From: Haliotis cracherodii
Lineage: Eukaryota
NCBI RefSeq assembly: GCF_022045235.1
Contig: NW_027266330.1
Span: forward strand, 1,736,001-1,800,000
Length of the DNA stretch: 64,000 nucleotides
Reading direction: 5' to 3'
Below are positions 2,266-49,555 of this stretch, in pieces. Below the pieces are notes generated by a model, which had not been told where the DNA came from, searched no databases, and worked only from the letters and a program-made list of their open reading frames with translations. The translations under genes and the position numbers were made by a program. Within the stretch, counting starts at the first letter, position 1; the number at the start of each line of letters is the position of its first letter.

Positions 2266-2984
2266 CTACTCAGATGCACACATGTATAACAATGACGTGT
2301 ATGTTGTTGTACATCGTTGTATTGCACTGTTGTATTGCACTGTTGTATACACCATGTCCAGAATGTCCGATACAGCATCATACTCAAGTCGCCCACGTGA
2401 CCGGCTCAGAAGACTGCACAGTGAATTATGGCCATGGTGTTTCGCTATCATGGCTGCTGTTTGCCCAGCATTGTTCTTTGTGCTGATGTTCACCTTGCCC
2501 TGCGAGAGGACATTCTTCACTATCTGTATATCCCCGCCCTTACAAGCATGGTGAAGGATGTTATTGCCGTCATTGTCCACGAGTGATACATCAGCTCCTT
2601 TTGCAACAAGTAAGTCAAACATTTCTTTATACCCGATGTAGGCTGCCGTCATGACGGGAGTCTTTCCCTTCTGGCCTCTGCTGTTGATGTCCGGAACGTC
2701 CTGTGACAGGAGATACCTCACCGTGCTCTCATGGCCTCCACCACACGCCAAGTGAAGGATGTTGTCGCCATTATCATCAACGAGGGACAGGTCGCCTCCA
2801 CTACTCACAAGTAACTTCACTATGTGTTTATGTCCTCGGTACACTGCCGCCATCACGGAAGTCCTCCCGCACTGGCCGCGCTTGTTGATGTCCTCGGGGC
2901 TCTCAGCTAAAATCTGTTTAACCAGACTTAGATCTCCCTTATGACAAGCATTACTCAGCCTGGTGTCAATACTGCATTGTTCTC
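2266..2984 (-). CDS. Gene B terminal exon: 6 ankyrin repeats
   Basis: tttcgtcaccAG acceptor (phase 1), in frame with ORF 2266..2856. Repeats LSNACHKG, GRTSVMAAVYRGH, NILHLACGGGH, GKTPVMTAAYIG, NILHHACKGG, GQTAAMIAKHHGH. Confidence 0.9.
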
Positions 2985-3940
2985 CTGGTGACGAAACATG
3001 GTTATTTTAATTGAATTTTTAATATGAAATAATATTTCGATCGTATGACGAGTACCTGAACTCTCCCACAGTTTACAAGTCTTTGCATTATTGTACAAGA
3101 TAACACACAGACATAGCTTAAGTTCAGCAGAAGATACCTGAATGTCAACTTATTTTAACTTATTTCAAACTTCAATCACAATAATAACTGGTGCATTTGT
3201 GATAAAAATCATTTCCGATACAAATCCCTCTTTTGACGTGTACAATATTTTCCCGTGTTTTTTTCAGGTGAACAATTAACTTGGTGATGCATGTGTTTGT
3301 GACGGGCACCGCGGTGGGGCAGGATGAGCGCACCTGTTCGCGGACACCAGGTCCTGGTATCATCACAATTTGATAGTGATTCATACAATATAACCGACAA
3401 TGTCCTTTCCATTATCATAAGAGATCTCTGCTGTAAGCAGAGTCGATTGTACACTTCCGTACATCATGAGCGAGAATGTATTAATCTCCATCAAATAGTG
3501 ATGACACCAGGTGTTCACGAAAAGGTGAGCATGATCGTGTCATTTGTCGTTTTATTTGTCAACAAAGACATTTACTGTCAGTATTCAAATATTATTTTAG
3601 TACTGGACTACGTTGAAAAATTTATCTTAATCTGATACAATGACTGTCATATTTGATAAAACATAATATAGTTGTAATACATTTAACTCTGAACCATATA
3701 CCTTCTTATGGGGTTTATTTGTTTTTAAGTTCGCAATTTGATGAAACACTTTTAATGGTGTTAAAGAATAGTATTGCACCTATCAATTTACACCTCTCTC
3801 CTTTTAATGACCAGAGGAGATCCTTTATATCAGAATGACAATGACAGCGAGTTAGTCATTTAATCCCATGTAGGAGTTCATTATAGAAAGTGCTTACTTC
3901 AGCAAAACGGTCTGGTTTATGTAGATGTTTCTGAACGTAC

Positions 3941-4000
3941 CTGGAAGTAAAGTCTCTCCGTCAGGGACGGGTCCATCTGCGAATGAGACGTTATGGGTAT
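3941..4000 (-). CDS. Gene B exon 6: cytoplasmic linker
   Basis: tcatgcAG acceptor, CCAG|GTACGT donor, 60 nt, phase 1-1. Encodes DTHNVSFADGPVPDGETLLP. Confidence 0.6.
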
Positions 4001-4574
4001 CTGCATGAATTTACATCATATATAAATTATTTTGTCTACAGTACTAAACTCTGATGACCTAAATACTGGCCAATTTGGCTAACAATAAAGGTGAGTCTTT
4101 GTCACAAGTGGGAGGGAAGCCTGATGTGATGCAGGCTGAGACGTTTCCCCACGAAACCCGCCAATTATGTCACGTCTCAGACATGCAACTAGATATATGA
4201 TGGAGTCCATGCTGCAAAGCTATTTCTAAATATCACCCATACAATACTGTGGTTGTCGCCATGCTTCCCTGACATGGTCAATAATTGTAAGCCCTGATAC
4301 ATTTGATTGATACGATTGATAGTTATTAACATATTTTGGATGATAGCCATAATAAGGTGATTTCCGCGACATTGCTGATGCAGTTAAATTCACTGTAGGT
4401 CGACACAGCTGAGCTTACCTTCTTTCTAATGTGACAAATGTCCTCGCATTGTAATGCTGTGTGCATACCACTGTAATTTCTTACCCGGTCACCAGTTGCT
4501 GAGGACCAATACCTACTGCTATAACTTTTCAATACGACGGCTGTAAATTTTCAAAGTGACGTTTGAGCACTCAC

Positions 4575-4582
4575 CAGGCGAA
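4575..4582 (-). CDS. Gene B exon 5: 8-nt microexon
   Basis: ttttctgtcattttgcAG|TTCGCCTG|GTGAGT. Converts phase 2 to phase 1, which the next exon needs. Confidence 0.5.
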
Positions 4583-4926
4583 CTGCAAAATGACAGAAAA
4601 CACACATAAGTAGTTGATGGCATTTAAACAAACAATCAAAAGATAATTGATCCTTTTCAAGCATAGTAAATGTACATATATTAATTAATTGCATTTGCAA
4701 TAGTTAACCATGATAAGAATAATAAAGAAGTTGTTATCAACATTAAATCTCCATGTGATGTTTACATACAACTTCTGAATGCCTATAAAGACTCTGAGCT
4801 CGATGACTGCTTCCTGATGCGTAATGCCATTCACTCAACCCTCTGTATGTATTTACCACTGAACACATCATTCATGTGCATGTACGTGTTGATGGTGATG
4901 AAACGTTCACCGTGTTCCGGTTTTAC

Positions 4927-4956
4927 CTTGTTTGTCCTCTTCTTGCTTTTCTGTGT
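4927..4956 (-). CDS. Gene B exon 4: basic juxtamembrane segment
   Basis: Long pyrimidine tract ttttctttcttcttacAG, AAG|GTAAAA donor, 30 nt, phase 2-2. Reads RHRKARRGQT, as expected directly after a TM. Confidence 0.65.
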
Positions 4957-5511
4957 CTGTAAGAAGAAAGAAAATAATCTTTGGAAGTCCATTTACTTCA
5001 AAAGATCTAGCTACATTTTGACATACATGAAGGACATATCCATGAAAGGAATGGTATTTGGAGCATAATTGATTTAAATCGACCTTAATGTTTTCTTGAT
5101 TATCCATCGAAACAGATTCCATTGGGAACAAACGGCAAACTAGCGGTAGCACGTACATTGTGTATGAATGGGGCACTAACAATCAGTGATGACACCCGGT
5201 GCCCACGACAAGGTTCCTGCCCTGCCGGTAGCATGCGCCACTCACACATTTTGTATAAAAATGTAAGAGTTTGTGTGTTGCCTGACGCCGCCCCCAAACA
5301 AACCAGACAACCACGTGATGGACCAGAAAATCCAGTATTCGCCTTTCATATTCGTTGACAAGCAAAGTCGGTAGATAAGGGAATTAAGCTGCTTGATATA
5401 CGTATGTCCCGCAACTTTCCGTGTCTCATCAAGTGTAGCATCAACGATACGCGGAAGTGTGTTATACCTCGCTTCCGGTCCCGTTGTCTTGCTTTCTGCT
5501 GTTGTTATCAT

Positions 5512-8500
5512 AGGTGTGTTGGCTGATATGTCACCTCTCTGCACTTGCACTATACCTACACTGTCCTGATGGTGTGTTGGCTGATATGTCACCTCTCTGC
5601 ACTTGCACTATACCTACACTGTCCTGATGGTGTGTTGGCTGATATGTCACCTCTCTGCACTTGCACTATACCTACACTGTCCTGATGGTGTGTTGGCTGA
5701 TATGTCACCTCTCTGCACTTGCACTATACCTACACTGTCCTGATGGTGTGTTGGCTGATATGTCACCTCTCTGCACTTGCACTATACCTACACTGTCCTG
5801 ATGGTGTGTTGGCTGATATGTCACCTCTCTGCACTTGCACTATACCTACACTGTCCTGATGGTGTGTTGGCTGATATGACACCTCTCTGCAGTTGCACTA
5901 TACCTACACTGTCCTGATGGTGTGTTGGCTGATATGTCACCTCTCTGCACTTGCACTATACCTACACTGTCCTGATGGTGTGTTGGCTGATATGACACCT
6001 CTCTGCACTTGCACTATACCTACACTGTCCTGATGGTGTGTTGGCTGATATGACACCTCTCTGCACTTGCACTATACCTACACTGTCCTGATGGTGCGTT
6101 GGCTGATATGACACCTCTCTGCACTTGCACTATACCTACACTGTCCTGATGGTGTGTTGGCTATGTCACCTCTCTGCACTTGCACTATACCTACACTGTC
6201 CTGATGGTGTGTTGGCTGATATGACACCTCTCTGCACTTGCACTATACCTACACTGTCCTGATGGTGTGTTGGCTGATATGACACCTCTCTGCACTTGCA
6301 CTATACCTACACTGTCCTGATGGTGCGTTGGCTGATATGACGCCTCTCTGCAGTTGCACTATACCTACACTGTCCTGATGGTGTGTTGGCTATGTCACCT
6401 CTCTGCACTTGCACTATACCTACACTGTCCTGATGGTGTGTTGGCTGATATGTCACCTCTCTGCACTTGCACTATACCTACACTGTCCTGATGGTGTGTT
6501 GGCTGATATGACACCTCTCTGCACTTGCACTATACCTACACTGTCCTGATGATGTGTTGGCTGATATGTCACCTCTCTGCACTTGCACTATACCTACACT
6601 GTCCTGATGGTGTGTTGGCTATGTCACCTCTCTGCACTTGCACTATACCTACACTGTCCTGATGGTGTGTTGGCTGATATGTCACCTCTCTGCACTTGCA
6701 CTATACCTACACTGTCCTGATGGTGTGTTGGCTGATATGACACCTCTCTGCACTTGCACTATACCTACACTGTCCTGATGATGTGTTGGCTGATATGTCA
6801 CCTCTCTGCACTTGCACTATACCTACACTGTCCTGATGGTGTGTTGGCTATGTCACCTCTCTGTACTTGCACTATACCTACACTGTCCTGATGGTGTGTT
6901 GGCTGATATGTCACCTCTCTGCACTTGCACTATACCTACACTGTCCTGATGGTGTGTTGGCAGATATGTCACCTCTCTGCACTTGCACTATACCTACACT
7001 GTCCTGATGGTGTGTTGGCTGATATGTCACCTCTCTGCACTTGCACTATACCTACACTGTCCTTGTGGTGTGTTGGCTGATATGACACCTCTCTGCACTT
7101 GCACTATACCTACACTGTCCTGATGGTGTGTTGGCTGATATGACACCTCTCTGCACTTGCACTATACCTACACTGTCCTGATGGTGTGTTGGCTGATATG
7201 TCACCTCTCTGCACTTGTACTATACCTACACTGTCCTTGTGGTGTGTTGGCTGATATGTCACCTCTCTGTACTTGCACTATACCTACACTGTCCTTGTGG
7301 TGTGTTGGCTGATATGTCACCTCTCTGCACTTGCACTATACCTACACTGTCCTGACGGTGTGTTGGCAGATATGTCACCTCTCTGCACTTGCACTATACC
7401 TACACTGTCCTGATGGTGCGTTGGCTGATATGTCACCTCTATGCACTTGCACTATACCTACACTGTCCTGATGGTGTGTTGGCTGATATGTCACCTCTCT
7501 GCACTTGCACTATACCTACACTGTCCTGATGGTGTGTTGGCTGATATGACACCTCTCTGCACTTGCACTATACCTACACTGTCCTTGTGGTGTGTTGGCT
7601 GATATGTCACCTCTCTGCACTTGCACTATACCTACACTGTCCTGATGGTGTGTTGGCTGATATGTCACCTCTCTGCACTTGTACTATACCTACACTGTCC
7701 TTGTGGTGTGTTGGCTATGTCACCTCTCTGCACTTGCACTATACCTACACTGTCCTGATGGTGTGTTGGCAGATATGTCACCTCTCTGCACTTGCACTAT
7801 ACCTACACTGTCCTGATGGTGTGTTGGCTGATATGACACCTCTCTGCACTTGCACTATACCTACACTGTCCTGATGGTGTGTTGGCTGATATGACACCTC
7901 TCTGCACTTGCACTATACCTACACTGTCCTGATGGTGTGTTGGCTGATATGACACCTCTCTGCACTTGCACTATACCTACACTGTCCTGATGGTGTGTTG
8001 GCTGATATGACACCTCTCTGCACTTGCACTATACCTACACTGTCCTGATGATGTGTTGGCTGATATGTCACCTCTCTGCACTTGCACTATACCTACACTG
8101 TCCTGATGGTGTGTTGGCTATGTCACCTCTCTGCACTTGCACTATACCTACACTGTCCTGATGGTGTGTTGGCTGATATGTCACCTCTCTGCACTTGCAC
8201 TATACCTACACTGTCCTGATGGTGTGTTGGCTGATATGACACCTCTCTGCACTTGCACTATACCGACACTGTCCTGATGATGTGTTGGCTGATATGTCAC
8301 CTCTCTGCACTTGCACTATACCTACACTGTCCTGATGGTGTGTTGGCTATGTCACCTCTCTGCACTTGCACTATACCTACACTGTCCTGATGGTGTGTTG
8401 GCTGATATGTCACCTCTCTGCACTTGCACTATACCTACACTGTCCTGATGGTGTGTTGGCTGATATGACACCTCTCTGCACTTGCACTATACCTACACTG

Positions 8501-8627
8501 TCCTTGTGGTGTGTTGGCTGATATGTCACCTCTCTGCACTTGCACTATACCTACACTGTCCTGATGGTGTGTTGGCTGATATGACACCTCACTGCACTTG
8601 CACTATACCTACACTGTCCTTGTGGTG
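5512..8627. repeat. 58-bp satellite array (~54 copies) in gene B intron
   Basis: Unit ggtgtgttggctgatatgtcacctctctgcacttgcactatacctacactgtcctgat; 55-bp variants lack 3 bp. Confidence 0.97.
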
Positions 8628-9023
8628 CCATGTCCAAATATTTTAGAAAAATGTTCTTGCAAATGTTGATGTGAATTAAAATCAAATATATATGATGTTT
8701 AAACTTCACAACCATAAACACGTTTCTGAATGACACGACTCCAACAAAATCACGAATTAGTAACATCGATTTGGAAACTGTTTTTGTTTTAATATTTTAG
8801 TAAATATGCCTCTTCCCGTTACTTTTCCATTAATGGAAATATAAACACACATTCTCCTGCCTGGCACGGGGTACAAGTTAAAGACATACATCCCTTGGTG
8901 TATCGCCAGTTTTGTAGTGAAACTGTGGGTGTATTGCTTGATAATCTCGATATGTTTGTAGTTTAAGTGTGTGTATTATTGCCCCAAAACATTCATATTT
9001 GGATAGTTGAGCCGAAATCGTAC

Positions 9024-9189
9024 CTTCTGTAGACAATCACTGCGACGATGACGCCGATGATAAGAAAGATTGTGACGAACACAGGGACAAGTATCGCAAC
9101 CATTGGTGTTGGTGCAGTCTGTTCTGATCTTCTCCCCTCAGCCGCCTTATTTACAGACCTCCCGTTGTCCTTATCTTTCTGATCATTTT
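9024..9189 (-). CDS. Gene B exon 3: stalk plus transmembrane helix
   Basis: ttattacAG acceptor, AG|GTACG donor, 166 nt, phase 1-2. Encodes ENDQKDKDNGRSVNKAAEGRRSEQTAPTP-MVAILVPVFVTIFLIIGVIVAVIV-YR. Confidence 0.8.
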
Positions 9190-9774
9190 CTGTAATAAAA
9201 GACTCTCTTATGTCCAGGCACCAAACACAACTACATACACATCCTAATGTTTGTCCGACTACTGCTCTGGGAATTTCGATTGAAGGACGGACATAATTTT
9301 AATGCAGTCGGTAACATTCCAACCATTTCGTAGTCGACAATGGACCAACCAGTGATTGAAAGTATGATGAAATATGATCCACACTATCGGGGCAATGGCA
9401 AACAATCAGTCAAGTAACCACGCCAGACAACCCACTGTATATATTCCACCTTGAGCAATGTACGGCATATTACTTTGTTGGATAGTGACCACTGGTCTTG
9501 GAAAACATCAGTGCAAGCGGCAATTATACAGTGGCATACGACCAGTGTGGCCCTTGAACAGAGGTCAGGACATGTTCTCTCACGATGGCGCATGGAGAGG
9601 GAACGTTTTGATCGACACTGAAGGTAATGGCTGGCTCTTTCTCTCTGTGCACTGATTCAATCCTGTGTTGTATCAAGTGTTTTTGACTGACGGTCAATCT
9701 TATTAAATCTAAAGTGCACATATGTTCTTATTAAAGTAGCTAGACAAATACGACTTTAAACGTCAAGAGACATC

Positions 9775-10870
9775 CACCCCAACCCACACCCCCCCCCCCC
9801 CCCCCCACCCCACACCCCACACACCCAAACGCCGCCTTACCCTAGCCCACGTCCCCCACAACCTCACCCCACCGACCCCACACACCCACACACCCACCCT
9901 ACACAGCCTGAACCCAACACACCCAAACCCAAACAAACCCACCCCACCCAGACCCTTCCACACACCAGTACAACCCCACCCCACACAACCCCCAGACACC
10001 ATCACAGACACCCAGCACTCCACACACCACACCCCTAGCACTCCACACACCACACCCCAGCACTCCACACAACTCACCCCTAGCACTCCACACACCACAC
10101 CCCCAGCACTCCACACACCCCACCCCTAGCACTCCACACACCCCACCCCAGAACTCCACACACCCCACCCCTAGCACTCCACACACCCCACCCCTAGCAC
10201 TCCACACACCCCACCCCTAGCACTCCACACACCCCACCCCTAGCACTCCACACACCCCACCCCTAGCACTCCACACACCCCACCCCTAGCACTCCACACA
10301 CCCCACCCCTAGCACTCCACACACCCCACCCCTAGCACTCCACACTCCCCACCCCTAGCACTCCACACACCCCACCCCAGAACTCCACACACCACACCCC
10401 AGCACTCCACACAACTCACCCCTAGCACTCCACACACCCTACCCCAGTACTCCACACATCCCACACCCCACACACCCCACACCCCACACCCCACACCCAG
10501 CACTCCACACACCCAAACACCGCCTTACCCTAGCCCACGTCCCCAACTTCCCCACCCCACCGACCCCACACACCCACCCTACACAGCCTGAACCCAACAC
10601 ACCCAAATCCAACCAAACCCACCCCACCCAGACCCTTCCACACACCAGTACAACTCCACCCGACACAACCCCCAGACAACCACACAGACACCCAGCACTC
10701 CACACACCCCACACCCAGCACTCCACACCCCCCACCCCAGCACTCCACACAACTCACCCCTAGCACTCCACACACCCCACCCCCAGCACTCCACACACCC
10801 CACCCTTAGCACTCCACACACCCCACCCCCAGCACTCCACACACCCCACCCCCAGCACTCCACACCACCT
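9775..10870. repeat. C/A-rich ~23-bp minisatellite with a duplicated ~200-bp block
   Basis: Units like cccctagcactccacacacccca; block ~9820-10030 recurs at ~10510-10720. Confidence 0.9.
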
Positions 10871-10910
10871 CCTCCGAATCCTTTAGACGTATGTATTACA
10901 TAATACATAC

Positions 10911-11198
10911 CTTGGTGTATTTCACAGAAATCCCCGGTATTGTGTCCTGTACAGCCCTGGGTGCACTGGCCGGTCTGGTGATTGCAGATGTGTTCCCGGC
11001 AGTTGCTGCTGCAGGGGAGTTGGCACTGAGCACCAAACCTTCCAGCCACGCACCCCTCAGAGCATCTACCACTGTGTCTGTCACAGTGCACATCCTGGTC
11101 GGAATGGGGGAAACAGGAACGGCTGCAGTTCAGTTGACAGTGTTCTCCATATTTGCCCACGGGACACTCCTGGCCCAATACGCCCAATACGCCCACTC
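10911..11198 (-). CDS. Gene B exon 2: two MEGF10/SCARF-type EGF-like repeats
   Basis: ctttttcAG acceptor, CAAG|GTATGT donor, 288 nt, phase 1-1. Encodes CPVGKYGEHCQLNCSRSC...CDRHSGRCSEGCVAGRFGAQCQLPCSSNC...CNHQTGQCTQGC. Confidence 0.85.
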
Positions 11199-11498
11199 CT
11201 GAAAAAGGAGCAAGAAGTTAATTTCCCCACAATACTTGGCGGCCTACTTGTAAAAACATACCTTGTTATATCCTCTTATAGGCGCTATTTCTAGATCCAG
11301 AAACCTTACGTCGAAAGTTAAACGCTTATAAAACCTAAAATGTTTTAAGAAAGCACGATGCGTGTGCATTGTTGTGGCGGATTAATGCTAAGTGACTTTT
11401 GGGACACTCCACAAACATCCCAACAACAATTATTTTACCAGCACAGCAGAGTAATCATTTCATGTTGGTCAATGAAGCTTAAACAGATCAGCACTCAC

Positions 11499-11532
11499 CA
11501 AATAAAGAGGTCAGCAGACCGTGTCCCAACAT
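11499..11532 (-). CDS. Gene B exon 1 (signal peptide) of EGF-TM-ankyrin receptor
   Basis: ATG at 11532 reads MLGHGLLTSLF+G, then a G|GTGAGT donor (phase 1). A polypyrimidine acceptor just upstream (~11555) implies a 5' UTR exon. Splicing to the next exon gives MLGHGLLTSLFGVGVLGVLG-QEC. Confidence 0.75.
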
Positions 11533-14500: not shown

Positions 14501-14619
14501 AGAAATGACACAATCATGAACACATGCTCATAATGTAGTCGGAACCGTACAATGGACGCAGCTGTTAGAAGAGAATTCTTATCATTGTGGACATATGTTC
14601 TTCTTCCATTTTTATGACA

Positions 14620-15572
14620 CGTGACACAACTACACGACACAACTACACGACACAACTACACGACACAGCTACACGACACAACTACACGACACAGCTACAC
14701 GACACAACTACACGACACAGCTACACGACACAACTACACGACAGAGCTACACGACACAACTACACGACACAACTACACGACACAACTACACGACACAACT
14801 GCACGACACAACTACACGACACAGCTACACGACACAGCTACACGACACAGCTACACGACACAGCTACACGACACAGCTACACGACACAGCTACACGACAC
14901 AACTGCACGACACAACTGCACGACACAACCACACGACACAACCACACGACACAACCACACGACACAACCACACGACACAACCACACGACACAGCTACACG
15001 ACACAACTGCACGACACAACTACACGACACAGCTACACGACACAGCTACACGACACAGCTACACGACACAGCTACACGACACAACTACACGACACAACTA
15101 CACGACACAGCTACACGACACAGCTACACGACACAGCTACACGACACAACTACACGGCACAGCTACACGACACAACTACACGACACAGCTACACGACACA
15201 GCTACACGACACAGCTACACGACACAGCTACACGACACAACTACACGACACAACTACACGATACAGCTACACGACACAACTACACGACACAGCTACACGA
15301 CACAGCTACACGACACAGCTACACGACACAGCTACACGACACAACTACATGACACAACTACACGACACAGCTACACGACACAGCTACACGACACAACTAC
15401 ACGACACAACTACACGACACAGCTACACGACACAACTACATGACACAACTACACGACACAGCTACACGACACAACTACACGACACAACTACACGACACAG
15501 CTACACGACACAACTACATGACACAACTACACGACACAGCTACACGACACAGCTACATGACACAACAACACA
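14620..15572. repeat. 13-bp minisatellite (acacgacaca[ag]ct)n
   Basis: Direct reading; explains the spurious TTRHSYTTQLHD ORFs. Confidence 0.97.
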
Positions 15573-15833
15573 ACTAGTGTATGGTTGCTATAATAGTTGT
15601 ATTGGCCACTTTTCAACAGGAAATGTAAACCATATTAGATAGATAATCTAATTTTGATAGCTTTACTATAACTGTCAGGCCAAGTTCGAATTTACTTTCC
15701 TCATGGTACAAAGAAGTCATTTCTCCCATGAAAATATCAAGGCCAGAATCACATGATAAAATCGGACTATTTCACCGGGTTCACCAGGTACAGTTTCAAA
15801 CTGTTGTATTATCTGTAAGTTTAAGTGTTGTGT

Positions 15834-17900: not shown

Positions 17901-18428
17901 CGGTGCGACTATTTTCAAGTGGCAATGCGTATAAGCACCTGACAGCTGAATGATCATTATGCGCTGTTCACATTCAAAGACCGCATGAGTGACTATTATG
18001 CTCCCTACAACCAGGCAAACATCTAAATTTTGTGCCGTGCATGAAATTGATGTGAAGTCTTTATGAATGTTTTAGGGTCCATTATCTATTTTCAGAAAAG
18101 ATAAATTACTTAACTTTATTTCAAACATGGTTACTCTTTTCCGATAACATATGTGGCTCATGAATAAAGTGAACGGGTTTTTTTCAAAGTACACAGTACA
18201 CATTACCAAGGCAACACAATCACTGCTTTCATGTTTCACAATACCCCATAGACAGTTTCCAATATGACATTTCACGATACCTTTATACTGACTTAGAATT
18301 TTATGATAATATTTCTCAACCTTTCATTTCAGAAACAACTACTGCTGTTATGATAAACCCAAAAGAAGAACCCAAAAATCCAGATCAGTATTAAAAAGCG
18401 ATATGTCAGACCAATCAGCATGTCTTAC

Positions 18429-19427
18429 CTGTAACACAAGATCCGGCAGAACAACTAGGCGATGAGCCGTTGTTTGTACAGTTGTACCCACGCATGTATT
18501 GAGTGATATTCTTCACATGTATACACACACTTGTGTTCATACCAACAATACCATCCAGACATACGTTGCATGATAGGTTGCAGCTTTCTACTAATAAACC
18601 ACTGCTGCAACCACTGCAACAAGATCCCTTGTTTAAGGCACAGGTGAGGTTGAGGCATTGCTGTAGGCACAGTTCACAATCAGACCTGACATGTCCAGGT
18701 GCACATCCTTCAATACACGCACCTGCGCGGTTACACCTTTGATGTTTGCAGTTAGAGATACATCTCCTTGAACACTTCGGGCCGTACCAGCCATCTACAC
18801 AACCGTGAACACACTCGCCAGTCTGGCTGTGGCACTCAGGGGTACATGAGTCTCCCTCAGGACATTGTTCATCAGTAGACAGGGAGGGATCAGCTCGGCA
18901 GGTGTCACTGCATGCTTCAGTACAGTTGTCTCCATAGAATCCTTGTCTGCATCCCTGTTGGCAGCCACTCTCACATCCACCGACACAGTGCTCACACGAG
19001 GATCTACAGTCCAGTCCAGAATATGGAGGCTGACACTCCTCACATGTTCCTGTGATCCTGTTGCAGGACTTGCATCTGCTGGAACACGTCCTACATCCTG
19101 CTCCGTAGTATGAGTCGCTGCACCCAGAGAAACAAGCTCCACCCATCTGGCAATACTCCCCATCACATCCACCTTGGCATCTGGTACAGTTGCCATGGTT
19201 AATGTAACATGGCCTCTGGCAGTTTGGGCCTTGAAATCCTGTTACGCAGCCATCAGTACATCTCCCAATCCCCCTGTCGAGGTGCAGCTCACATGTGCGG
19301 TTCCTGCACCTTCTGCTGCACACATCCAAGCATTTCGGGCCGAAATATCCTCTATAGCAGTGTGTGCTACATCGACCTCTCTGCTCCTCACACTCGGTGC
19401 ATTGCTGGTTATCGGAACATTTACCAC
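18429..19427 (-). CDS. Gene A exon 2: multiple EGF-like repeats (MEGF10/11, scavenger receptor class F-like)
   Basis: 999-nt phase 1-1 exon (ttctcAG ... ACAG|GTAAG) inside ORF 18415..19470, with repeated CxxGxYGxxC...C-C motifs. Confidence 0.9.
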
Positions 19428-20074
19428 CTGAGAATGAATAAAAAGCTACCAAAACCATTTCCTTAATCATAAAGTATCTCTTCTATTAAAAGTCAGAGTC
19501 CATTGTACGACTCAGACCATATCATCATACTTTAACATAGACTTATGGCTGTCGTTGCGCTTTGGTCGCTTAGTGGAACGTGGCCTTGCACCACAAAGTT
19601 GACTTATACGTCAAAATATCCTTTGACGTAATCTGTGCAATTTTTTAGCAACAGCCACCGCAAAACAATGCCATGTGATGCCAGCCCAAGGAGAGGTTGT
19701 GCATAAGTCCCTCTCAGCGATCTATTATATCTCCACACAATCTCATTGAATAAGCCCATCGATGTTGGGAGATTTCAGTATTTGTCATTGAAACTTGTCC
19801 CTGCACTACAGACGCTCGCGCCTTGCTATTTAGTAATACCAATTATTGATATCAAACATTTGTATCTTAAACGGGTCAATTATATATACACTAGACATCA
19901 AAGGCATCAAATGCATTGTCTATTCTGGCTGGAGTGACACCGTCAGAGAACATAGTTTTTTATCAACTAAGTTAATAATAATGTCAACATTCTGGAAGCG
20001 CTGCCAACAAGCGACCCCATTTACGATGCCCTACCTCATGTAGCACAATGTATATAGATAACTAATCTGCTTAC

Positions 20075-24072: not shown

Positions 24073-24258
24073 TGTTTGTGTACTTGAATGAACAATATAT
24101 TAATGATTTGGAAAGGTTATAATGCCACTTTATCCCAAATATTAACATAACTATATCAAAACGAAACTTGGAAGTGGTTGTATTGAACAATCTGGTGAAC
24201 AACAGTGTTGATTTAAAGCCAAACAATACGGCTTCTTTAGCTGTATTTATTGTTCCAG

Positions 24259-27200
24259 AAACAAAGGACAGCGTCCCCTCTCCTACCCCATACTCGGAAG
24301 GTTCTGACAGTGACCTCCACGGCGCCTGTGTCCCTCTAGGTCCTCCTCAACGTACATCCAGATCTGACAGTGACCTCCACGGCGCCTGTGTACCCCCAGT
24401 TCCTCCTCAACGTACATCCAGATCTGACAGTGACCTCCACGGCGCCTGTGTACCCCCAGTTCCTCCTCAACGTACATCCAGTTCTGACAGTGACCTCCAC
24501 GGCGCCTGTGACCTTCCAGTTCCTCCTCAACGTGCATCCAGTTCTGACAGTGACCTCCACGGCGCCTGTGACCTTCCAGTTCCTCCTCAACGTGCATCCA
24601 GTTCTGACAGTGACCTCCACGGCGCCTGTGACCTTCCAGTTCCTCCTCAACGTGCATCCAGTTCTGACAGTGACCTCCACGGCGCCTGTGTCCCCCCAGT
24701 TCCTCCTCAACGTACATCCAGTTCTGACAGTGACCACCACGGCGCATTTGTCCCACAAGTTTCTCCTCAACGTACAGCCATTTCTGACAGTGACCACCAC
24801 GTCGCCTGTGTTCCACCAGTTCATCCTCAACGTACATCCAGTTCTGACAGTGACCTACACATCGCATGTGTCCCCCCAGTTCCTCCACAACGCACAGCCA
24901 GTTCTGACAGTGTTCTCCACGTCGCCTGTAGAACGGGCAAGTTGCAACAAGTGCAGCACTTGCTGTCTGGTGGCCAAGCGGATGTCAACGCTGAAGGCAA
25001 GGACGGCAGGACGCCGGTGATGCTAGCAGCATGGTATGGCCACAAGAAGGTGTTTGACTTCCTTGTTAGTAACGGCAGCGATGTAACTCAAGTGAGCGAT
25101 GATGATGACAACATTCTGCATTTTGCATGTTTGGGAGGTAATATAGAGATAGTGAAATATATCCTGGAACAAAATTTTATTGACATAAACAGTCGAGGAA
25201 AGTTCGGGAGAACCCCAGTTATGAAAGCAGCATGGGGAGGTCATGTGACCGTGTTTGACCTTCTGGAAAGGATAGGAGCTGACCTGTCCCTAGTGAGCGA
25301 GCACGGAGACACCATTTTACACTTAGCATGTAACAGAGATAATGTGGCTATGGTGAAGCACATCCTGTCCAAGCACATCGTCGGCGTTAACTGCCGGGGT
25401 AAGAACGGGAGGACACCTGTGATGATTGCAGCGATGTTTGGACACAGGGGCGTGTTAAATGTACTTGTTGATAATGGTGGTGATGTGTCACTCGTGGATT
25501 CTAATGGTGAAAACTTGCTCCATGTGGCGTGTCGGGGAGGAAGTAGCAGCATGGTGCTGCATTGTCTCTCTAAACGTGTCGCTCGCATCAACAGTAAGAC
25601 AAGACACGGACAGACGCCAGTGATGTTAGCAGCCGAGGGGGGACATGGAGGAGTGTTTGATTTGCTTGTCGGTAAAGGAGCTGACCTGGCACTAAAGGAT
25701 GGTCACAACAACAACATACTACACCTGGCATGTAGTGGGGGTAGTGTGAAGATTGTACAGCGTGTCATGTCAGAAAACATTGCTGGAGTCACAAGTATAG
25801 GAAGCAATGATCGAACTCCTCTGATGTTTGCAGCAGAAAGGGGTCATACAAAAGTAATTGATCTACTTAGGGCGCAGGGATGTGATTTATCCGTAACGGA
25901 TGTGGACAATAACAACCTCCTCCATATAGCCTGTCTTGGTGGACAAATAGAGATGGTTCTATATGTCCTAAGATTGGACCTGTTTGACATTAACAGTAGA
26001 GGGAAGACTAGACAGACGCCACTGATGTTTGCAGCTTTAAGGGGAAATAGAAACGTGTTTGATGTCCTCGTAAGTAAAGGCGGTGACCCATCCCTGGTGG
26101 ATGATGACGGTAACAACATTCTCCACGTCGCCTCCTTAGGGGAAGATGTAGAGATGGTGAAGTATGTCCTCTCGCTAAACATCGTTGACATCAACAGTCG
26201 AGGGAAGTACGGGAGGACGGCGGTGATGCTTGCAGCGGAGTCTGGACATCGGGATGTGTTTTACTTCCTTGTGTGTAAAGGCAGTGACGTGTTGTGTGTT
26301 GATGACAATGGTGACAGCATCCTCCACGTGGCCTGTATTGGAGGACATGTGCAGATGGTGGAATGTATCGTCTCACTGAACATTGTGGACATCAACAGCG
26401 GGGGGCAGTACGGAGGAACGCCGGTCATGTCAGCAGCTGAGGGGGGACACCGAGACGTGATGGACTTGCTCATCAGTAGAGGTGGAGACGTGTCTCTGGT
26501 GGATGACTACAACAACAACATCCTCCACGTTGTCTGTATTGGGGGCAACTCAGACATAGTCAAGTATGTCCTCTCAAAGCATGTTGTGGACATTAACAGC
26601 AGAGGCGAGTACGGGAGAACACCTGTCATGATCGCAGCACGCTGGGGACATAAAGGCGTGTTTGATCTCCTGGTCAGCAGAGGTGCAGATGTGTCACTTG
26701 TAAATAACCACGGGGACAACATCCTCCACGTGGCTTGCTATGGGGGTCACTTGGACATGGTGAAGCACATTCTTTATAAATATCATGTAAATCTCAACAT
26801 CACAAATCAGTACGGAAGGACAGCAGTGATGATTGCATCACGAATGGGCTATGTAGGTGTGGTAGACCTGCTTGTAAGAAGAGGAGCAGATGTGTCTCTG
26901 GTGAATCACAATGGTGATAACCTGTTACACGTTGCCTGCAGCGGGGGGCACCTGGAGATGGTGGAGTATGTGGTTCTGCGCGACATGGTCGACATAAACG
27001 GCGTGGAACATGTTGGGATGACACCGCTGATGTTAGCAGCAAAGAGTGGACACATTCAGGTGTTTGACTTCCTTGTGAGCGAAGAATGTGACGTGTCTGT
27101 TTTGAATGTGAATGGGGACAACATCCTCCACGTGGCGTGCAGTGGGGGAGATGAGAACATGGTGAAACACATACTCCAGCTGGGCCTTGTGGACGTGACT

Positions 27201-27284
27201 GCCAGGAACCATTTCGGGTCAACAGCAGCAATGGTAGCCAGGGAACAGGGCCACCAGGGGCTCTCGGACAACATGCCAAGTTGA
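24259..27284 (+). CDS. ANK1: long ankyrin-repeat protein (24 repeats) with N-terminal 20-aa Pro-rich repeats; main/terminal exon
   Basis: Open frame 24168..27284 with a phase-1 acceptor tttattgttccAG at 24258. Alternating GRTPVMxAAxxGH and DNILHVACxGG ankyrin units. Resembles ANKRD28/44/52-like annotations but no orthology is claimed. Confidence 0.9.
24301..24929 (+). repeat. Coding 60-bp tandem repeat (10 full copies plus a partial) in ANK1
   Basis: Units start at 24301, 24361 ... 24901 and encode SDSDLHGACVPPVPPQRTSS. Confidence 0.97.
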
Positions 27285-30552: not shown

Positions 30553-30909
30553 ACTTTATAGAGAAAGACAGATACTTATACAAGACAATGCACGATAATA
30601 AGTGCAGGATCTTTGGGGGTCATCATGACACATCATCATGGTTGTTCCCCAACAAAATAATGTATACATACATAACAATTGTGACATAACAATTACATAA
30701 CTAAATGTACAACTATTTTGATTTTGAGGGCGTTTTTCTGCTGCTAATGTTAGCAATATTTCATCTATACCAAAGCATGGAAACCAATTCAAGGATTTCA
30801 AATGTACAGGAATGGAACCTGTCTTTAATCACTTAGCTATGCCCCAGAGTGTTATACTGTATTGAATGTGTGGTGTTGTAGACTAATCACTAACTATGTA
30901 TCTGGCAGG

Positions 30910-33321
30910 ATGTCGTCCACCAACATCAACACGGATCTATACCATGCCTGCTGCTCGGGGAGGTTGGATGCAGTTATTCGCATCCTACAGGAAGATCGAG
31001 TGGACATCAACACCAGGGGGGCACACGGCTGGACACCGGTGATGGCAGCTGCACATGGGGAGCATGTTAGGGTGTTTAAACTACTCCACATGAAGCAAGC
31101 TGACATGTCACTCTTGGATGAAGATGGTGACACCATTCTGCATGTTGCCTGCTCCGGAAATAGTCTGAAAATAGTGAAGTTGATTCTCTCAGATGGAAAG
31201 ATTGACATCAACATGAGAGGCAAACACGGATGGACGCCGGTGATGGTGGCCGCTCGACATGGGTGTCGACATGTGTATCTTGAACTTATAAACAACATCA
31301 ACTGCGATGTGAGGCATGTTGGGGATGATGGTGATAACCTTCTACACTTGGCTTGTCTTAAAGGCCATTTGTTCATTGTTGAAGATCTGCTTTCACGTAA
31401 AATATTTAACATCAACTGTAGAGGGAAGTTAGGCAGAACCCCAATAATGAAGGCCGCATGGGCTGGTTCTCGACGAATTTTCGATTTGATCATAGAGAAA
31501 GGAGGCAACACGTCGCTGTTAGATGACAAAGGATTGAACATCCTTCACGTGGCTTGTGCTGGAGGGAAGGTGCACATTGTGAAGTACATCCTCTCAAAGC
31601 GCCTGGTGGGAATCAACAGTAGGAGGCAAGATGGGAGAACACCATTGATGGTAGCAGCGGAGTGTGGACACAAAGACGTGTACAACCTACTCTTAAAAGA
31701 AGGAGGAGACAGGTCGATGAGAGACACCGAGGGCAACAACATCCTCCATGTGGCGTGCAGGGGAGGCTACAGGAGCATGGTGCAGCACATCTGTGACAGG
31801 AACTTACCAGGGCGACAGCAGCAACAGATCCACGCCACAGACACAAAGGGGAGGACACCCCTGATGGCGGCAGCAGAAACAGGGCACAAGGAAGCCTTTG
31901 AGATAGTGAGGCGTAAAGGAGGCGACATCACCATCAGAGACAGCTTAGGGAACAAGCTCATTTATGTTGCTTGTCTTGGAGGGGATTTACCAATGATAAT
32001 GCATATCGCCTCACTGGATTTCACGGATGGCCTGAATGATGGCAGGATGTTGATCCTTGCGGCAGAGAGTGGCTGTAAGGATGTTTTCGATTTTCTTTTG
32101 GGTGAAGGATGTGATTTGTCACTGGATAATAAGGAAGAAGATACGGTGTTCCATGCTGCCTGTCGTGGAGGTCATGTGGATATGGTAGAATATGTTCTCT
32201 CCCGGTTCACCTTTGACATCAACAAAAGGGGAAAATACAGAGGGCGAACTGCATTGATGATGGCAGTAGAGAAAGGCAATATGAAAGTGTTTGATCTCCT
32301 TTTGACAAAACAATGTGATGTGTTTGTCGTGGATGAGGATAATGATAATATCCTCCACGTGGCATGCATGGGAGGACACGCAGAGATGGTGAAATATATT
32401 GTCTCTAAAGGGTATTTTGATATCAACTGTAAGGGTAAACATGGACGGACGCCCATGATGTTTGCAGCAGAGTTTGGCAACATTGATGTCTTCTACTTCA
32501 CAGTTTGCAAAGGGGGTGATGTTTCAGAAGTAGACGCTGATGGAATGAACATCCTTCACTTGGCCTGCTTAGGAAACAATGTGAACATGGTGAATGAACT
32601 CCTGACACTAGAACTTGTTGACATTGACACGAAAGACTGCCGGGGGCAGACGCCAGCGATGTTGGCGGCACGTCAGGGCAACAGAAACGTTCTGGAACTT
32701 CTCATTAGGGAACATGCAAATCTCCTACAAGTAGACAACCATGGTGACAATATGCTCCAACTGGCCTGCATTCGAGATAATATGAGCATTGTAAACTATC
32801 TACTCTTAAAACACTTTTTCGACATCAACAGTGCCGGGCGAGACGGAAGGACGCCGGTGATGGTGGCAGCAAACCGGGGATGTAAACCTTTATTTGACTT
32901 ACTTGTGAAAGAAGGGGCCATTTTGACACTTGTGGATGCTTACAATAACAACATCCTGCATCTGGCATCTAGTGGAGGAAATGAGGATATTGTGGAGAGG
33001 GTCCTGATGGATACACTTATTGACATCAACAGCAGAGGCAGGTACGGGAAGACCGCGGCGATGATAGCATCAGAGGGTGGACATATAGACGTATTAGATT
33101 TCCTTCTACAAAAGGGTTGTGATTCGTCTGTGGTTGATGATGACAACAACAACATCCTTCACGTCGCCTGTGCTGGAGGAGATGAAGAATGCAATGTGCA
33201 GATGGTGCAGTACATCCTCCCACTGCCAGGAGTAGACATCAAGGATGTCAACAAGAGTGGTGCTACAGCAGCAGACATCGCACAAACAAAGAAACATGAA
33301 CATATACTGTCGTTGTTTTAA
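30910..33321 (+). CDS. ANK2: cytoplasmic 24-ankyrin-repeat protein (803 aa, single coding exon)
   Basis: ATG immediately after a tctggcAG|G acceptor; probable non-coding upstream exon ending CAG|GTAAGT at 30347. Same alternating ankyrin units as ANK1. Confidence 0.9.
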   Translation: MSSTNINTDLYHACCSGRLDAVIRILQEDRVDINTRGAHGWTPVMAAAHGEHVRVFKLLHMKQADMSLLDEDGDTILHVACSGNSLKIVKLILSDGKIDINMRGKHGWTPVMVAARHGCRHVYLELINNINCDVRHVGDDGDNLLHLACLKGHLFIVEDLLSRKIFNINCRGKLGRTPIMKAAWAGSRRIFDLIIEKGGNTSLLDDKGLNILHVACAGGKVHIVKYILSKRLVGINSRRQDGRTPLMVAAECGHKDVYNLLLKEGGDRSMRDTEGNNILHVACRGGYRSMVQHICDRNLPGRQQQQIHATDTKGRTPLMAAAETGHKEAFEIVRRKGGDITIRDSLGNKLIYVACLGGDLPMIMHIASLDFTDGLNDGRMLILAAESGCKDVFDFLLGEGCDLSLDNKEEDTVFHAACRGGHVDMVEYVLSRFTFDINKRGKYRGRTALMMAVEKGNMKVFDLLLTKQCDVFVVDEDNDNILHVACMGGHAEMVKYIVSKGYFDINCKGKHGRTPMMFAAEFGNIDVFYFTVCKGGDVSEVDADGMNILHLACLGNNVNMVNELLTLELVDIDTKDCRGQTPAMLAARQGNRNVLELLIREHANLLQVDNHGDNMLQLACIRDNMSIVNYLLLKHFFDINSAGRDGRTPVMVAANRGCKPLFDLLVKEGAILTLVDAYNNNILHLASSGGNEDIVERVLMDTLIDINSRGRYGKTAAMIASEGGHIDVLDFLLQKGCDSSVVDDDNNNILHVACAGGDEECNVQMVQYILPLPGVDIKDVNKSGATAADIAQTKKHEHILSLF

Positions 33322-41468: not shown

Positions 41469-41609
41469 NNNNNNNNNNNNNNNNNNNNNNNNNNNNNNNN
41501 NNNNNNNNNNNNNNNNNNNNNNNNNNNNNNNNNNNNNNNNNNNNNNNNNNNNNNNNNNNNNNNNNNNNNNNNNNNNNNNNNNNNNNNNNNNNNNNNNNNN
41601 NNNNNNNNN
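41469..41609. other. Assembly gap (N run) in gene C intron 1
   Basis: Run of n. Confidence 0.99.
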
Positions 41610-41998: not shown

Positions 41999-42949
41999 GT
42001 GCTAGTTGTACGGGTAATCAGCAATGTTCCGACTGTGATGCGCAGACACAAGGATGCCTCACAGACTGCCATAGAGGATATTTCGGCGCCACATGCATGG
42101 ATGTTTGCAGCACAAGGTGCAGGAACAACACATGTCACCTGCTTCCCGACAGGGGGATTGCGAGATGTACTGATGGCTGCATCCCGGGATTCCAAGGCCC
42201 AAACTGCCAGAGGCCATGTTACACTCACCAGGAAGACTGTACCAGATGCCCAGGTGGATGTGATGGGGAGTTTTGCCAGATGGGTGGAACTTGTTTCTCT
42301 GGTTGCAGCGACTCATACTACGGAGCAAGATGTAGGACGTGTTCCAGCAGATGTAAGTCCTGCAACAGGATCACAGGAACATGTGAGGAGTGTCAGCCTC
42401 CATATTCTGGACTGGCCTGTAGATCCTCGTGTGAGCACTGTGTCGGTGGATGTGAGAGTGGCTGCCAACAGGGATGCAGACAAGGATTCTATGGAGACAA
42501 CTGTACTGAAGCATGCAGTGACACCTGCCGAGCTGATCCCTCCCTGTCTACTGATGAACAATGTCCTGAGGGAGACTCATGTACCCCTGAGTGCCACAGC
42601 CAGACTGGCGAGTGTGTTCACGGTTGTGTAGATGGCTGGTACGGCCCGAAGTGTTCAAGGCGATGCAACTCTAACTGCAAACATCAAAGGTGTAACCGCG
42701 CAGGTGCGTGTATTGAAGGATGTGCACAGGGATATATTAAGTATGGATGTGAACGATGCCTGGAGAAGTGCCTTACCTGTGCCTTAAACAACGGACCTTG
42801 TTGCAATGGTTGCAACAGTGGTTTAGCTGGGGATGGTTGCAACCTATCATGCAATTTATGTCAGGATGATATTACTGACACGAGGAGTACAGGAGTACAG
42901 GAGTATAGTTTGTTTGTTTGTTTGTTTGCTGGATGTATACAGGAATGTG
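41999..42949 (+). CDS. Gene C exon 2: multiple EGF-like repeats (MEGF10/SCARF-like)
   Basis: ttttctAG acceptor (phase 1), in frame with ORF 42097..43023; Cys pattern paralogous to gene A. The 3' donor (TGTG|GTATCA) is a best guess. Confidence 0.85.
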
Positions 42950-43208
42950 GTATCACTAGCAATCTCCTTCTGGATCCTTTAAAACGGGTTAACCTGGAAC
43001 TTGTAAAAGTTTTTAAATCGTAGAACGCAAATATGGGAAACCAGGTCACGCTTTGATACATGACCGATTAATATTGTATCTCACTTCCTTCGATCGATGC
43101 AGTTTGGACACTTTGTGATTTACAATCCTGAGCATGTTAAAATACATACACCCACTCACTTCTTGACAGACACTATGTTCTATAATTGTGATTTGTTACC
43201 TATTTCAG

Positions 43209-49361: not shown

Positions 49362-49555
49362 NNNNNNNNNNNNNNNNNNNNNNNNNNNNNNNNNNNNNNN
49401 NNNNNNNNNNNNNNNNNNNNNNNNNNNNNNNNNNNNNNNNNNNNNNNNNNNNNNNNNNNNNNNNNNNNNNNNNNNNNNNNNNNNNNNNNNNNNNNNNNNN
49501 NNNNNNNNNNNNNNNNNNNNNNNNNNNNNNNNNNNNNNNNNNNNNNNNNNNNNNN
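49362..49555. other. Assembly gap (N run)
   Basis: Run of n. Confidence 0.99.

Follow-up and report, generated by a model that had tools for sequence, protein, structure and literature searches.

Receptors of the Notch/LIN-12/GLP-1 group carry, in this order, an EGF-like ectodomain, a single transmembrane helix (TM), a run of basic residues and a cytoplasmic ankyrin array, together with three LNR modules and NOD/NODP, RAM and PEST elements; they act through ligand-dependent S2/S3 proteolysis and nuclear action of the intracellular domain. Notch has been discussed as a product of domain shuffling, and a "Notch-like" protein of Monosiga brevicollis is composed of a signal peptide, one EGF, two LNR domains, a TM and three ankyrin repeats (Gazave et al. 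2009, PMC2770060). The receptors SCARF1, MEGF10, Draper and CED-1 are type-I proteins with 6-17 EGF-like modules, an N-terminal EMI domain (MEGF10, Draper) and a tail bearing NPxY and/or ITAM motifs. Transmembrane-domain-containing NLRs have been described in sea anemones (van der Burg et al. 2016, PMC5094078) and provide a precedent for membrane-bound members of invertebrate STAND/NLR expansions. Here we analyse a gene of the abalone Haliotis cracherodii that occupies positions 2,266 to 11,532, minus strand, of a 64,000-nucleotide stretch of contig NW_027266330.1 (1,736,001 to 1,800,000 of the forward strand; hereafter the window, whose first letter is position 1). Its predicted product combines two EGF-like modules, a single TM and six ankyrin repeats, and the gene is best read as a short-array member, devoid of the nucleoside triphosphatase (NTPase) domain, of a membrane-anchored STAND-ankyrin (NLR-like) superfamily.

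Compared with the systems named above, the gene shares with Notch the order of parts, but LNR, NOD/NODP, RAM and PEST are absent, the EGF type is different, and the two sets of ankyrin repeats show no kinship beyond the generic repeat. The Monosiga protein differs by its two LNR domains, of which the abalone family has none, by its EGF type and by its lineage. With SCARF1, MEGF10, Draper and CED-1 the gene shares type-I topology and, on indirect evidence, an EGF-like module with a similar cysteine pattern, whereas it has two such modules only and an ankyrin array as its cytoplasmic domain. The sea anemone NLRs have 3-5 N-terminal TM helices, NACHT and LRRs, and neither an EGF head nor ankyrin repeats.

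The seven-exon gene and its predicted product

A sequence-only reading of the window had joined seven minus-strand segments into a chain of 1305 nt (434 codons) ending in a TAG stop at 2266-2268. The internal boundaries are indeed all of GT-AG type and their phases compatible (0, 1, 1, 2, 2, 1, 1); boundaries, phases and stop were all verified in the sequence. It is also correct that a mechanical list of open reading frames (ORFs) shows the gene as two unconnected pieces only, an ankyrin frame at 2266..2856 and an EGF frame at 10579..11196 that runs into intron repeats. The gene is not hidden, however, as had been supposed, since RefSeq models, which are computed predictions, exist for it in both H. 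cracherodii and H. rufescens. The H. cracherodii model, XP_071085549.1 (P0236, 426 aa), is named "putative ankyrin repeat protein RF_0381" and is, by scripted comparison, letter for letter the translation of the chain with the 8-nt micro-exon included and exon 6 starting at 3976. The proposed exon coordinates were thus exact for six of the seven exons, while exon 6 had been drawn 24 nt longer at its 5' end than in the database models (4000 vs 3976); the shorter form lacks 24 in-frame nt, or 8 aa, and both acceptors are AG. Only the 3976 form is present in the databases, and the 434-aa isoform is absent from the protein collection. The locus is confirmed as a real seven-exon gene, probably a functional one, already modelled by RefSeq as XP_071085549.1. 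Its parts are as follows.

Exon 1, 11499..11532, minus strand: ATG and the first 11 signal-peptide codons, followed by a GT donor; matches the N-terminus of XP_071085549.1 exactly.
Exon 2, 10911..11198, minus strand: 288 nt (phase 1 to 1), coding for the last part of the signal peptide and for two EGF-like modules with 14 Cys.
Intron 2 tandem repeat, 10014..10865, no strand: 23-bp C-rich unit in 37.5 copies, the origin of spurious ORFs of GVLGV type.
Exon 3, 9024..9189, minus strand: low-complexity linker of about 30 aa and the single TM helix (residues about 135-164).
Intron 3 minisatellite, 5513..8627, no strand: 58-bp unit in 54 copies with 95% matches, occupying most of intron 3.
Exon 4, 4927..4956, minus strand: 30 nt encoding the basic juxtamembrane stretch HRKARRGQT; present in XP_071085549.1 and in the H. 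rufescens model XP_048246865.1.
Exon 5, 4575..4582, minus strand: 8-nt micro-exon, phase 2 to 1, included in XP_071085549.1.
Exon 6, 3941..3976, minus strand: 36 nt in RefSeq; the longer version, 3941-4000, uses an upstream in-frame AG.
Exon 7, 2266..2984, minus strand: six ankyrin repeats (residues about 191-381), followed by 45 aa of non-repeat tail up to the stop at 2266-2268.

Introns 2 and 3 are inflated by their 23-bp and 58-bp tandem repeats. Symmetric phase 1-1 exons such as exon 2 are the classic format of exon shuffling.

Searching a protein collection with exon 7 returned only Haliotis proteins as top matches and led to the H. rufescens ortholog XP_048246865.1 (P0006, 381 aa, "palmitoyltransferase AKR1-like"; 95% identical in this search), in whose 90% cluster XP_071085549.1 was found. 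The ortholog aligns with the RefSeq-form product without gaps over 381 residues, 360 of which are identical (94%), and has the same layout, reading from a signal peptide through a Cys-rich module, a TM and RRHRKARRGQT into ankyrin repeats. Because hydropathy analysis gives a hydrophobic N-terminus and one TM (windows 132-164), 14 Cys precede this TM and Pfam places ankyrin repeats at residues 197-381 of XP_071085549.1, a type-I topology with the EGF modules outside and the ankyrins inside is supported. The layout first proposed for the protein, namely signal peptide, two EGF-like modules, TM and six ankyrin repeats, is supported as well. The array begins about 25 residues after the TM, and exon 7 alone matches Ank_2 at 6e-49, while Pfam found nothing significant in exons 2 and 3.

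Kinship with membrane-anchored STAND-ankyrin proteins

Far from representing a new receptor class standing alone, as had been suggested, the gene belongs to a multigene family of Haliotis, and its head and ankyrin repeats also occur with an nSTAND3 domain between them. In genome-wide searches, whose match counts are lower bounds, paralogous matches numbered over 258 for the ankyrin exon and over 151 for the EGF exon. Among the matches listed, the nine closest EGF exons (63-81% identical) all lie on the same contig at 1.75-2.39 Mb, and three of the nine have weak TM-exon matches 1-1.5 kb downstream. Also among the matches listed, an EGF exon lies upstream of an ankyrin exon on the same strand and within 15 kb at 11 loci, as compared with one locus in reversed order and none on opposite strands, and the window gene is one of these at least 11 EGF-then-ankyrin loci. 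A TM-like exon was seen between the EGF exon and an ankyrin ORF of 620-669 aa at three loci (L005, L025, L027), and L031, the gene of XP_071085979.1 (P0085), has EGF, TM and ankyrin exons in order. Some close EGF paralogs seemed to have no ankyrin exon within 8 kb, but the idea that they carry different tails was rejected, as L038, the gene of XP_071085234.1 (P0084), has its ankyrin exon farther off. At L036 a second copy of the EGF exon (L036:3907-4185, G000:C67:1942809-1943084, plus strand) was noted, situated 2.4 kb downstream from an intact copy. It contains an in-frame TGA and is therefore a pseudo-exon or a broken tandem duplicate in the cluster.

Searches with the heads of the H. rufescens proteins P0006 and P0087 retrieved 14 other proteins, all with ankyrin repeats and all from H. 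rufescens, H. cracherodii, H. rubra or H. asinina. No family member outside Haliotis was found in these searches, which were word-based and length-limited, so that absence elsewhere is not thereby shown. Seven or more full-length relatives align collinearly through signal peptide, two EGF modules, TM, basic cluster and ankyrins, in an alignment where 14 Cys are invariant and both the TM and the framework residues of the ankyrin repeats are conserved. Paralogs such as XP_071085979.1, XP_071085234.1 and XP_071085980.1 (P0086), together with P0082, P0083 and P0087 of H. rufescens, have in common with the window gene the signal peptide, two EGF-like modules (at 55-58% identity), a TM in which P-V is conserved, the basic cluster, the micro-exon and the ankyrin repeats, and they belong to the same cluster, which spans 0.65 Mb of the contig. 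They differ in having about 10 repeats and about 500 aa, compared with the six repeats, the extra 30-nt exon for the basic stretch and the 45-aa tail of the window gene.

The micro-exon sets the frame: when skipping was computed, translation ended at codon 178, ahead of the ankyrin repeats, which would leave a tail-less EGF/TM protein. At its junction the window gene reads S-S-P-D and the H. rufescens ortholog S-S-A-D. Equivalent micro-exons were found in two paralogs, with 11 nt at L031:4454-4464 (gene of P0085, strong splice signals) and 20 nt at L038:8264-8283 (gene of P0084). All three lengths (8, 11 and 20 nt) equal 2 modulo 3, and all three exons occupy the same position between the TM and ankyrin exons in phase 2-to-1. 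Skipping any one of them would shift the frame and yield a tail-less EGF/TM protein, and micro-exon inclusion could be a splicing switch.

The tie to NTPase-bearing proteins came from three large relatives, namely XP_071098478.1 of H. cracherodii (P0101, 1623 aa), XP_048249071.1 of H. rufescens (P0126, 1655 aa) and XP_067653650.1 of H. asinina (P0189, 1488 aa). Each has 14-15 Cys and a TM near residue 131, followed by nSTAND3 (Pfam scores of 84, 68 and 68 bits, respectively, vs a cut-off of 27.2) and then a long ankyrin array. Over 147-180 aa, their heads are 31-36% identical to residues 1-186 of XP_071085549.1 (E 3e-19 to 3e-27), and their ankyrin arrays are 42-47% identical to that of the window gene; two further top ankyrin relatives (P0088 and P0092) also bear nSTAND3. 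The three proteins thus share with the window gene a homologous signal-peptide/EGF x2/TM head and the same type of ankyrin repeat, and differ by the nSTAND3 NTPase, about 450 aa long, that separates TM and ankyrins, and by arrays of 20-30 repeats. In XP_071085549.1 there is no Pfam match to nSTAND3 (PF20720), and tblastn with approximately residues 190-640 of the three proteins detected no NTPase remnant in the window, the introns of the gene included. Because the head and repeat type are common to the nSTAND3 paralogs and the window gene has no NTPase, we propose its placement as an NTPase-less, short-array member of their superfamily. Within a tree of ankyrin sequences, the rows that bear an EGF/TM head cluster together (3 label changes vs 10.4 in shuffles); two rows labelled "none" are partial proteins.

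Considering these relationships, we favour, with a probability of roughly 0.55, the interpretation that the protein is a membrane-anchored, NTPase-less member of the STAND-ankyrin family that serves as a membrane-retained adaptor or decoy rather than as a cleaved regulator of transcription. On this view a single cassette serves the whole family: a cleavable signal peptide with two SCARF/MEGF-like EGF modules on a phase 1-1 exon, a TM exon and a frame-setting micro-exon are spliced to ankyrin arrays drawn from the very large abalone ankyrin expansion, the joining being either direct or via the nSTAND3 NTPase. The type-I protein of the window gene, with its short variable stalk and six cytoplasmic repeats, most likely stays in the membrane. 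On the outside, the EGF pair may engage an extracellular or cell-surface ligand, or like molecules, as a small module for recognition or self-association, while on the inside the ankyrin array may act as a membrane-tethered binding platform that recruits partners of the NTPase-bearing NLR-like paralogs or competes for them. An adaptor or decoy in an innate-recognition system would be the simplest such role because head and repeats are common to the nSTAND3-bearing paralogs.

Several points weigh against this interpretation. The function is deduced from architecture and kinship only. Expression, inclusion of the micro-exon and the acceptor used for exon 6 are taken from RefSeq models, which are computed. 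The base of the ankyrin tree is a polytomy, and the tree does not decide between loss and gain of the NTPase or between one and several fusions. The C-terminus, extended by 45 aa in one of the two species, hints at relaxed constraint at that end. Moreover, the EGF exon matches no Pfam EGF model at E<=1 and no PDB sequence, whether the exon alone or a profile is used, and the structural model of the modules reached a predicted local distance difference test (pLDDT) of only 67, with a best Foldseek E-value of 4e-3; the "EGF x2" label, of the SCARF/MEGF (laminin-like) type, is supported only indirectly.

Scavenger receptors, decay and Notch as alternatives

The indirect evidence for the identity of the EGF-like modules also bears on an alternative that we consider unlikely, according to which the protein is a scavenger or engulfment receptor of SCARF/MEGF10/Draper type, functionally unrelated to the STAND paralogs, whose EGF modules bind modified self or microbial ligands and whose ankyrins, in place of the usual NPxY/ITAM tail, connect it with the cytoskeleton or the endocytic machinery. 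Other places in the genome hold multi-repeat ORFs whose units are homologous to the EGF exon (39-43% identity, E 2e-17), and one of these ORFs (L043) passes the Pfam cut-off for EGF_laminin. The spacing in the exon is C-x3-C where a classical EGF has C-x-C. When residues 1-185 were placed in the Atlas by their features, the nearest clusters were mollusc "scavenger receptor class F member 1-like" and "MEGF10" (0.89, 173-177 shared features). For an AlphaFold model of the modules built on an 11-row alignment, Foldseek ranked human SCARF1 (8hna) first (E 4.3e-3, probability 0.95), and all other matches were tandem EGF or laminin-EGF arrays. These results agree with the sequence-only reading that the spacing is MEGF/SCARF-like and support modules of that type rather than of the Notch type; the Atlas placement and the SCARF1 match speak for a scavenger receptor as well. 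Yet such a receptor would be expected to look different: there are two modules only, no EMI domain was matched by Pfam, and a regex search of residues 165-426 for NPxY and ITAM (YxxL-x6-12-YxxL) found neither in the tail. The head is common to the NTPase-bearing paralogs (E roughly 1e-19 to 1e-27), which ties the family to STAND-type signalling and not to engulfment.

Some results obtained with the EGF exon were set aside. PDB matches to a designed Kelch protein and a hydrophobin were dismissed as noise, and an AlphaFold run on 7 close EGF paralogs was discarded at a pLDDT of 41. In the Atlas, residues 1-185 also resemble, by predicted structure, the N-termini of mollusc clusters of receptor-type tyrosine phosphatase mu/kappa-like and F5/8-type-C MEGF-like proteins, which hints that the EGF/TM head may be a widely shuffled cassette in molluscs.

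It is improbable, in our estimation, that the gene is a decaying or functionless truncated copy, a by-product of rapid duplication and exon shuffling in the cluster, whose frame has stayed open by chance. Such an origin would fit the short array, with six repeats vs ten or more in relatives, the in-frame TGA in the neighbouring EGF exon copy, and a C-terminus that differs between the species. The H. rufescens ortholog ends right after the sixth repeat (...LCSLL), while the H. cracherodii frame continues for 45 residues (window 2266-2400, minus strand) that are part of the RefSeq model, absent from the ortholog and without recognisable fold, a stop loss or an indel being possible causes of the difference; the suggestion that they are a decayed seventh repeat was rejected, as the score of a tail-only alignment was equalled or beaten by 228 of 300 shuffles. 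Against decay, each of the seven exons, the frame-critical 8-nt one included, is intact in both species together with its splice sites, and conservation in this ortholog pair is the highest among three pairs of the family (94% vs 91% and 89%). Between H. cracherodii and H. rufescens the divergence, based on small counts, is 13% in the stalk as compared with 3.6% in the EGF modules, 3.3% in the TM, 3.8% in the juxtamembrane stretch and 5.8% in the ankyrins. For the EGF exon, the ratio of nonsynonymous to synonymous substitution rates (dN/dS) against six paralogs is 0.15-0.28, at dS of 0.57-1.2. Because this ratio is low, substitutions are concentrated in the stalk and the pair is so well conserved, the pattern argues for a working gene.

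A further alternative holds that the protein is a convergent miniature Notch, in which ligand binding leads to shedding and intramembrane cleavage and the ankyrin domain, with its basic motif, enters the nucleus to regulate transcription. The succession of EGF, single TM, basic cluster and ankyrins is literally that of Notch, and many type-I proteins with short ectodomains are substrates of gamma-secretase, which counts in favour of such a mechanism. When the whole paralog P0085 was placed in the Atlas by protein-language-model features, Notch clusters likewise came first (0.90); however, only 122-127 of 256 features were shared, which is the range given for chance or distant matches, and the placement reflects shared domain composition.

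In P0236, P0085 and P0238 Pfam returned no match at E<=1 to LNR (PF00066), NOD or NODP, and the cytoplasmic part contains no W.P as in the RAM WxP motif; the sequence-only reading had likewise noted that LNR and the WxP motif are absent. The two EGF modules gave no match at E<=1 to hEGF or calcium-binding EGF (PF00008 / PF07645) either, repeats of which Notch has a long array. Nothing resembles the Notch negative regulatory region; the linker between the second EGF module and the TM consists of about 30 low-complexity residues and is the least conserved segment. The LNR exons of the genome lie on other contigs, at C5:18358588-18358824 and on C7 (third LNR match at C7:27048478), and the canonical Notch ankyrin exons follow about 1-13 kb downstream of LNR exons in the bona fide Notch gene (L039, G000:C5:18348500-18358499, minus strand).

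The ankyrin repeats themselves were also compared. Those of the window gene match the Notch ankyrin exons of L039 at 33% over 57 aa with 39 bits, as against 160-200 bits for Haliotis paralogs. They are of the consensus type, with NOMPC, DARPins, ankyrin-1/2 and Kidins220 as best PDB matches and no Notch chain among the best 60. A grouping of the ankyrins inside Notch was thus not found, and since they do not derive from Notch, our data support the earlier proposal that the EGF/TM/ankyrin layout was assembled independently.

The Val/Ile-rich TM followed by the RRHRKARR stretch had been read as perhaps allowing intramembrane cleavage and nuclear entry, a view that gained no support from comparison with the family. 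Because every relative, NTPase-bearing proteins of 1500-1650 aa included, carries a basic cluster of variable size (3-7 K/R) right after the TM, the stretch is not special, and it reads as an ordinary positive-inside stop-transfer anchor. The cluster of the window gene has no K-K/R-x-K/R core; part of it is encoded on the 30-nt exon, which occurs only in this ortholog pair, whereas in P0085 the basic residues are encoded at the end of the TM exon. Cleavage of the Notch kind appears unlikely from these comparisons, and a miniature Notch as a whole very unlikely. We give hardly any credence to a variant in which a Notch-like intramembrane-proteolysis system sheds the ectodomain, the ankyrins signal in the nucleus or via the STAND paralogs, and inclusion of the micro-exon decides between a signalling form and a tail-less decoy.

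Surrounding sequence and significance

The rest of the window contains further ankyrin and Cys-rich frames. Open frames of 1038 and 819 aa at 24168-27281 and 30862-33318 (both plus strand, opposite to the EGF-TM-ankyrin gene) contain little besides ankyrin repeats (Ank_2 at 1e-140 and 1e-138) and belong to the same abalone ankyrin expansion. Two ORFs of 351 and 308 aa, at 18415-19470 (minus strand) and 41999-43023 (plus strand), contain Cys-rich units that resemble the EGF heads of the nSTAND3 proteins (tblastn 31-37%, E down to 8e-10); neither has a Pfam match at 0.001, and they may be multi-EGF exons of neighbouring genes. A 13-bp tandem array in 73 copies at 14623-15571 underlies a 351-aa ORF at 14587-15642, the Pfam match of which is likely spurious. 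For the neighbouring RefSeq protein P0109 no location in the window was found at >=90% identity, and runs of N occupy 41469-41609 and 49362-49555.

Full-text literature searches found no description of an EGF-TM-ankyrin receptor in abalone or other molluscs. The gene model itself was already public; what appears in no protein name, and in no paper that we found, is the architecture, a family of single-pass proteins in which a SCARF/MEGF-like EGF head is followed directly by an ankyrin array, the same head being used on NTPase-bearing NLR-like proteins. The RefSeq names "palmitoyltransferase AKR1-like" and "ankyrin repeat protein RF_0381" mask the receptor-like layout and should be taken as a warning to users of the annotation. 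The likeness to the layout of Notch is a purely formal convergence, and the family offers a natural example of exon shuffling that builds receptor variants inside a lineage-specific expansion of immune type. The black abalone, H. cracherodii, is critically endangered and affected by withering syndrome. If the STAND paralogs are indeed regulated by the NTPase-less forms, these forms would provide a tractable entry into the workings of membrane-anchored NLR-like receptors in molluscs.

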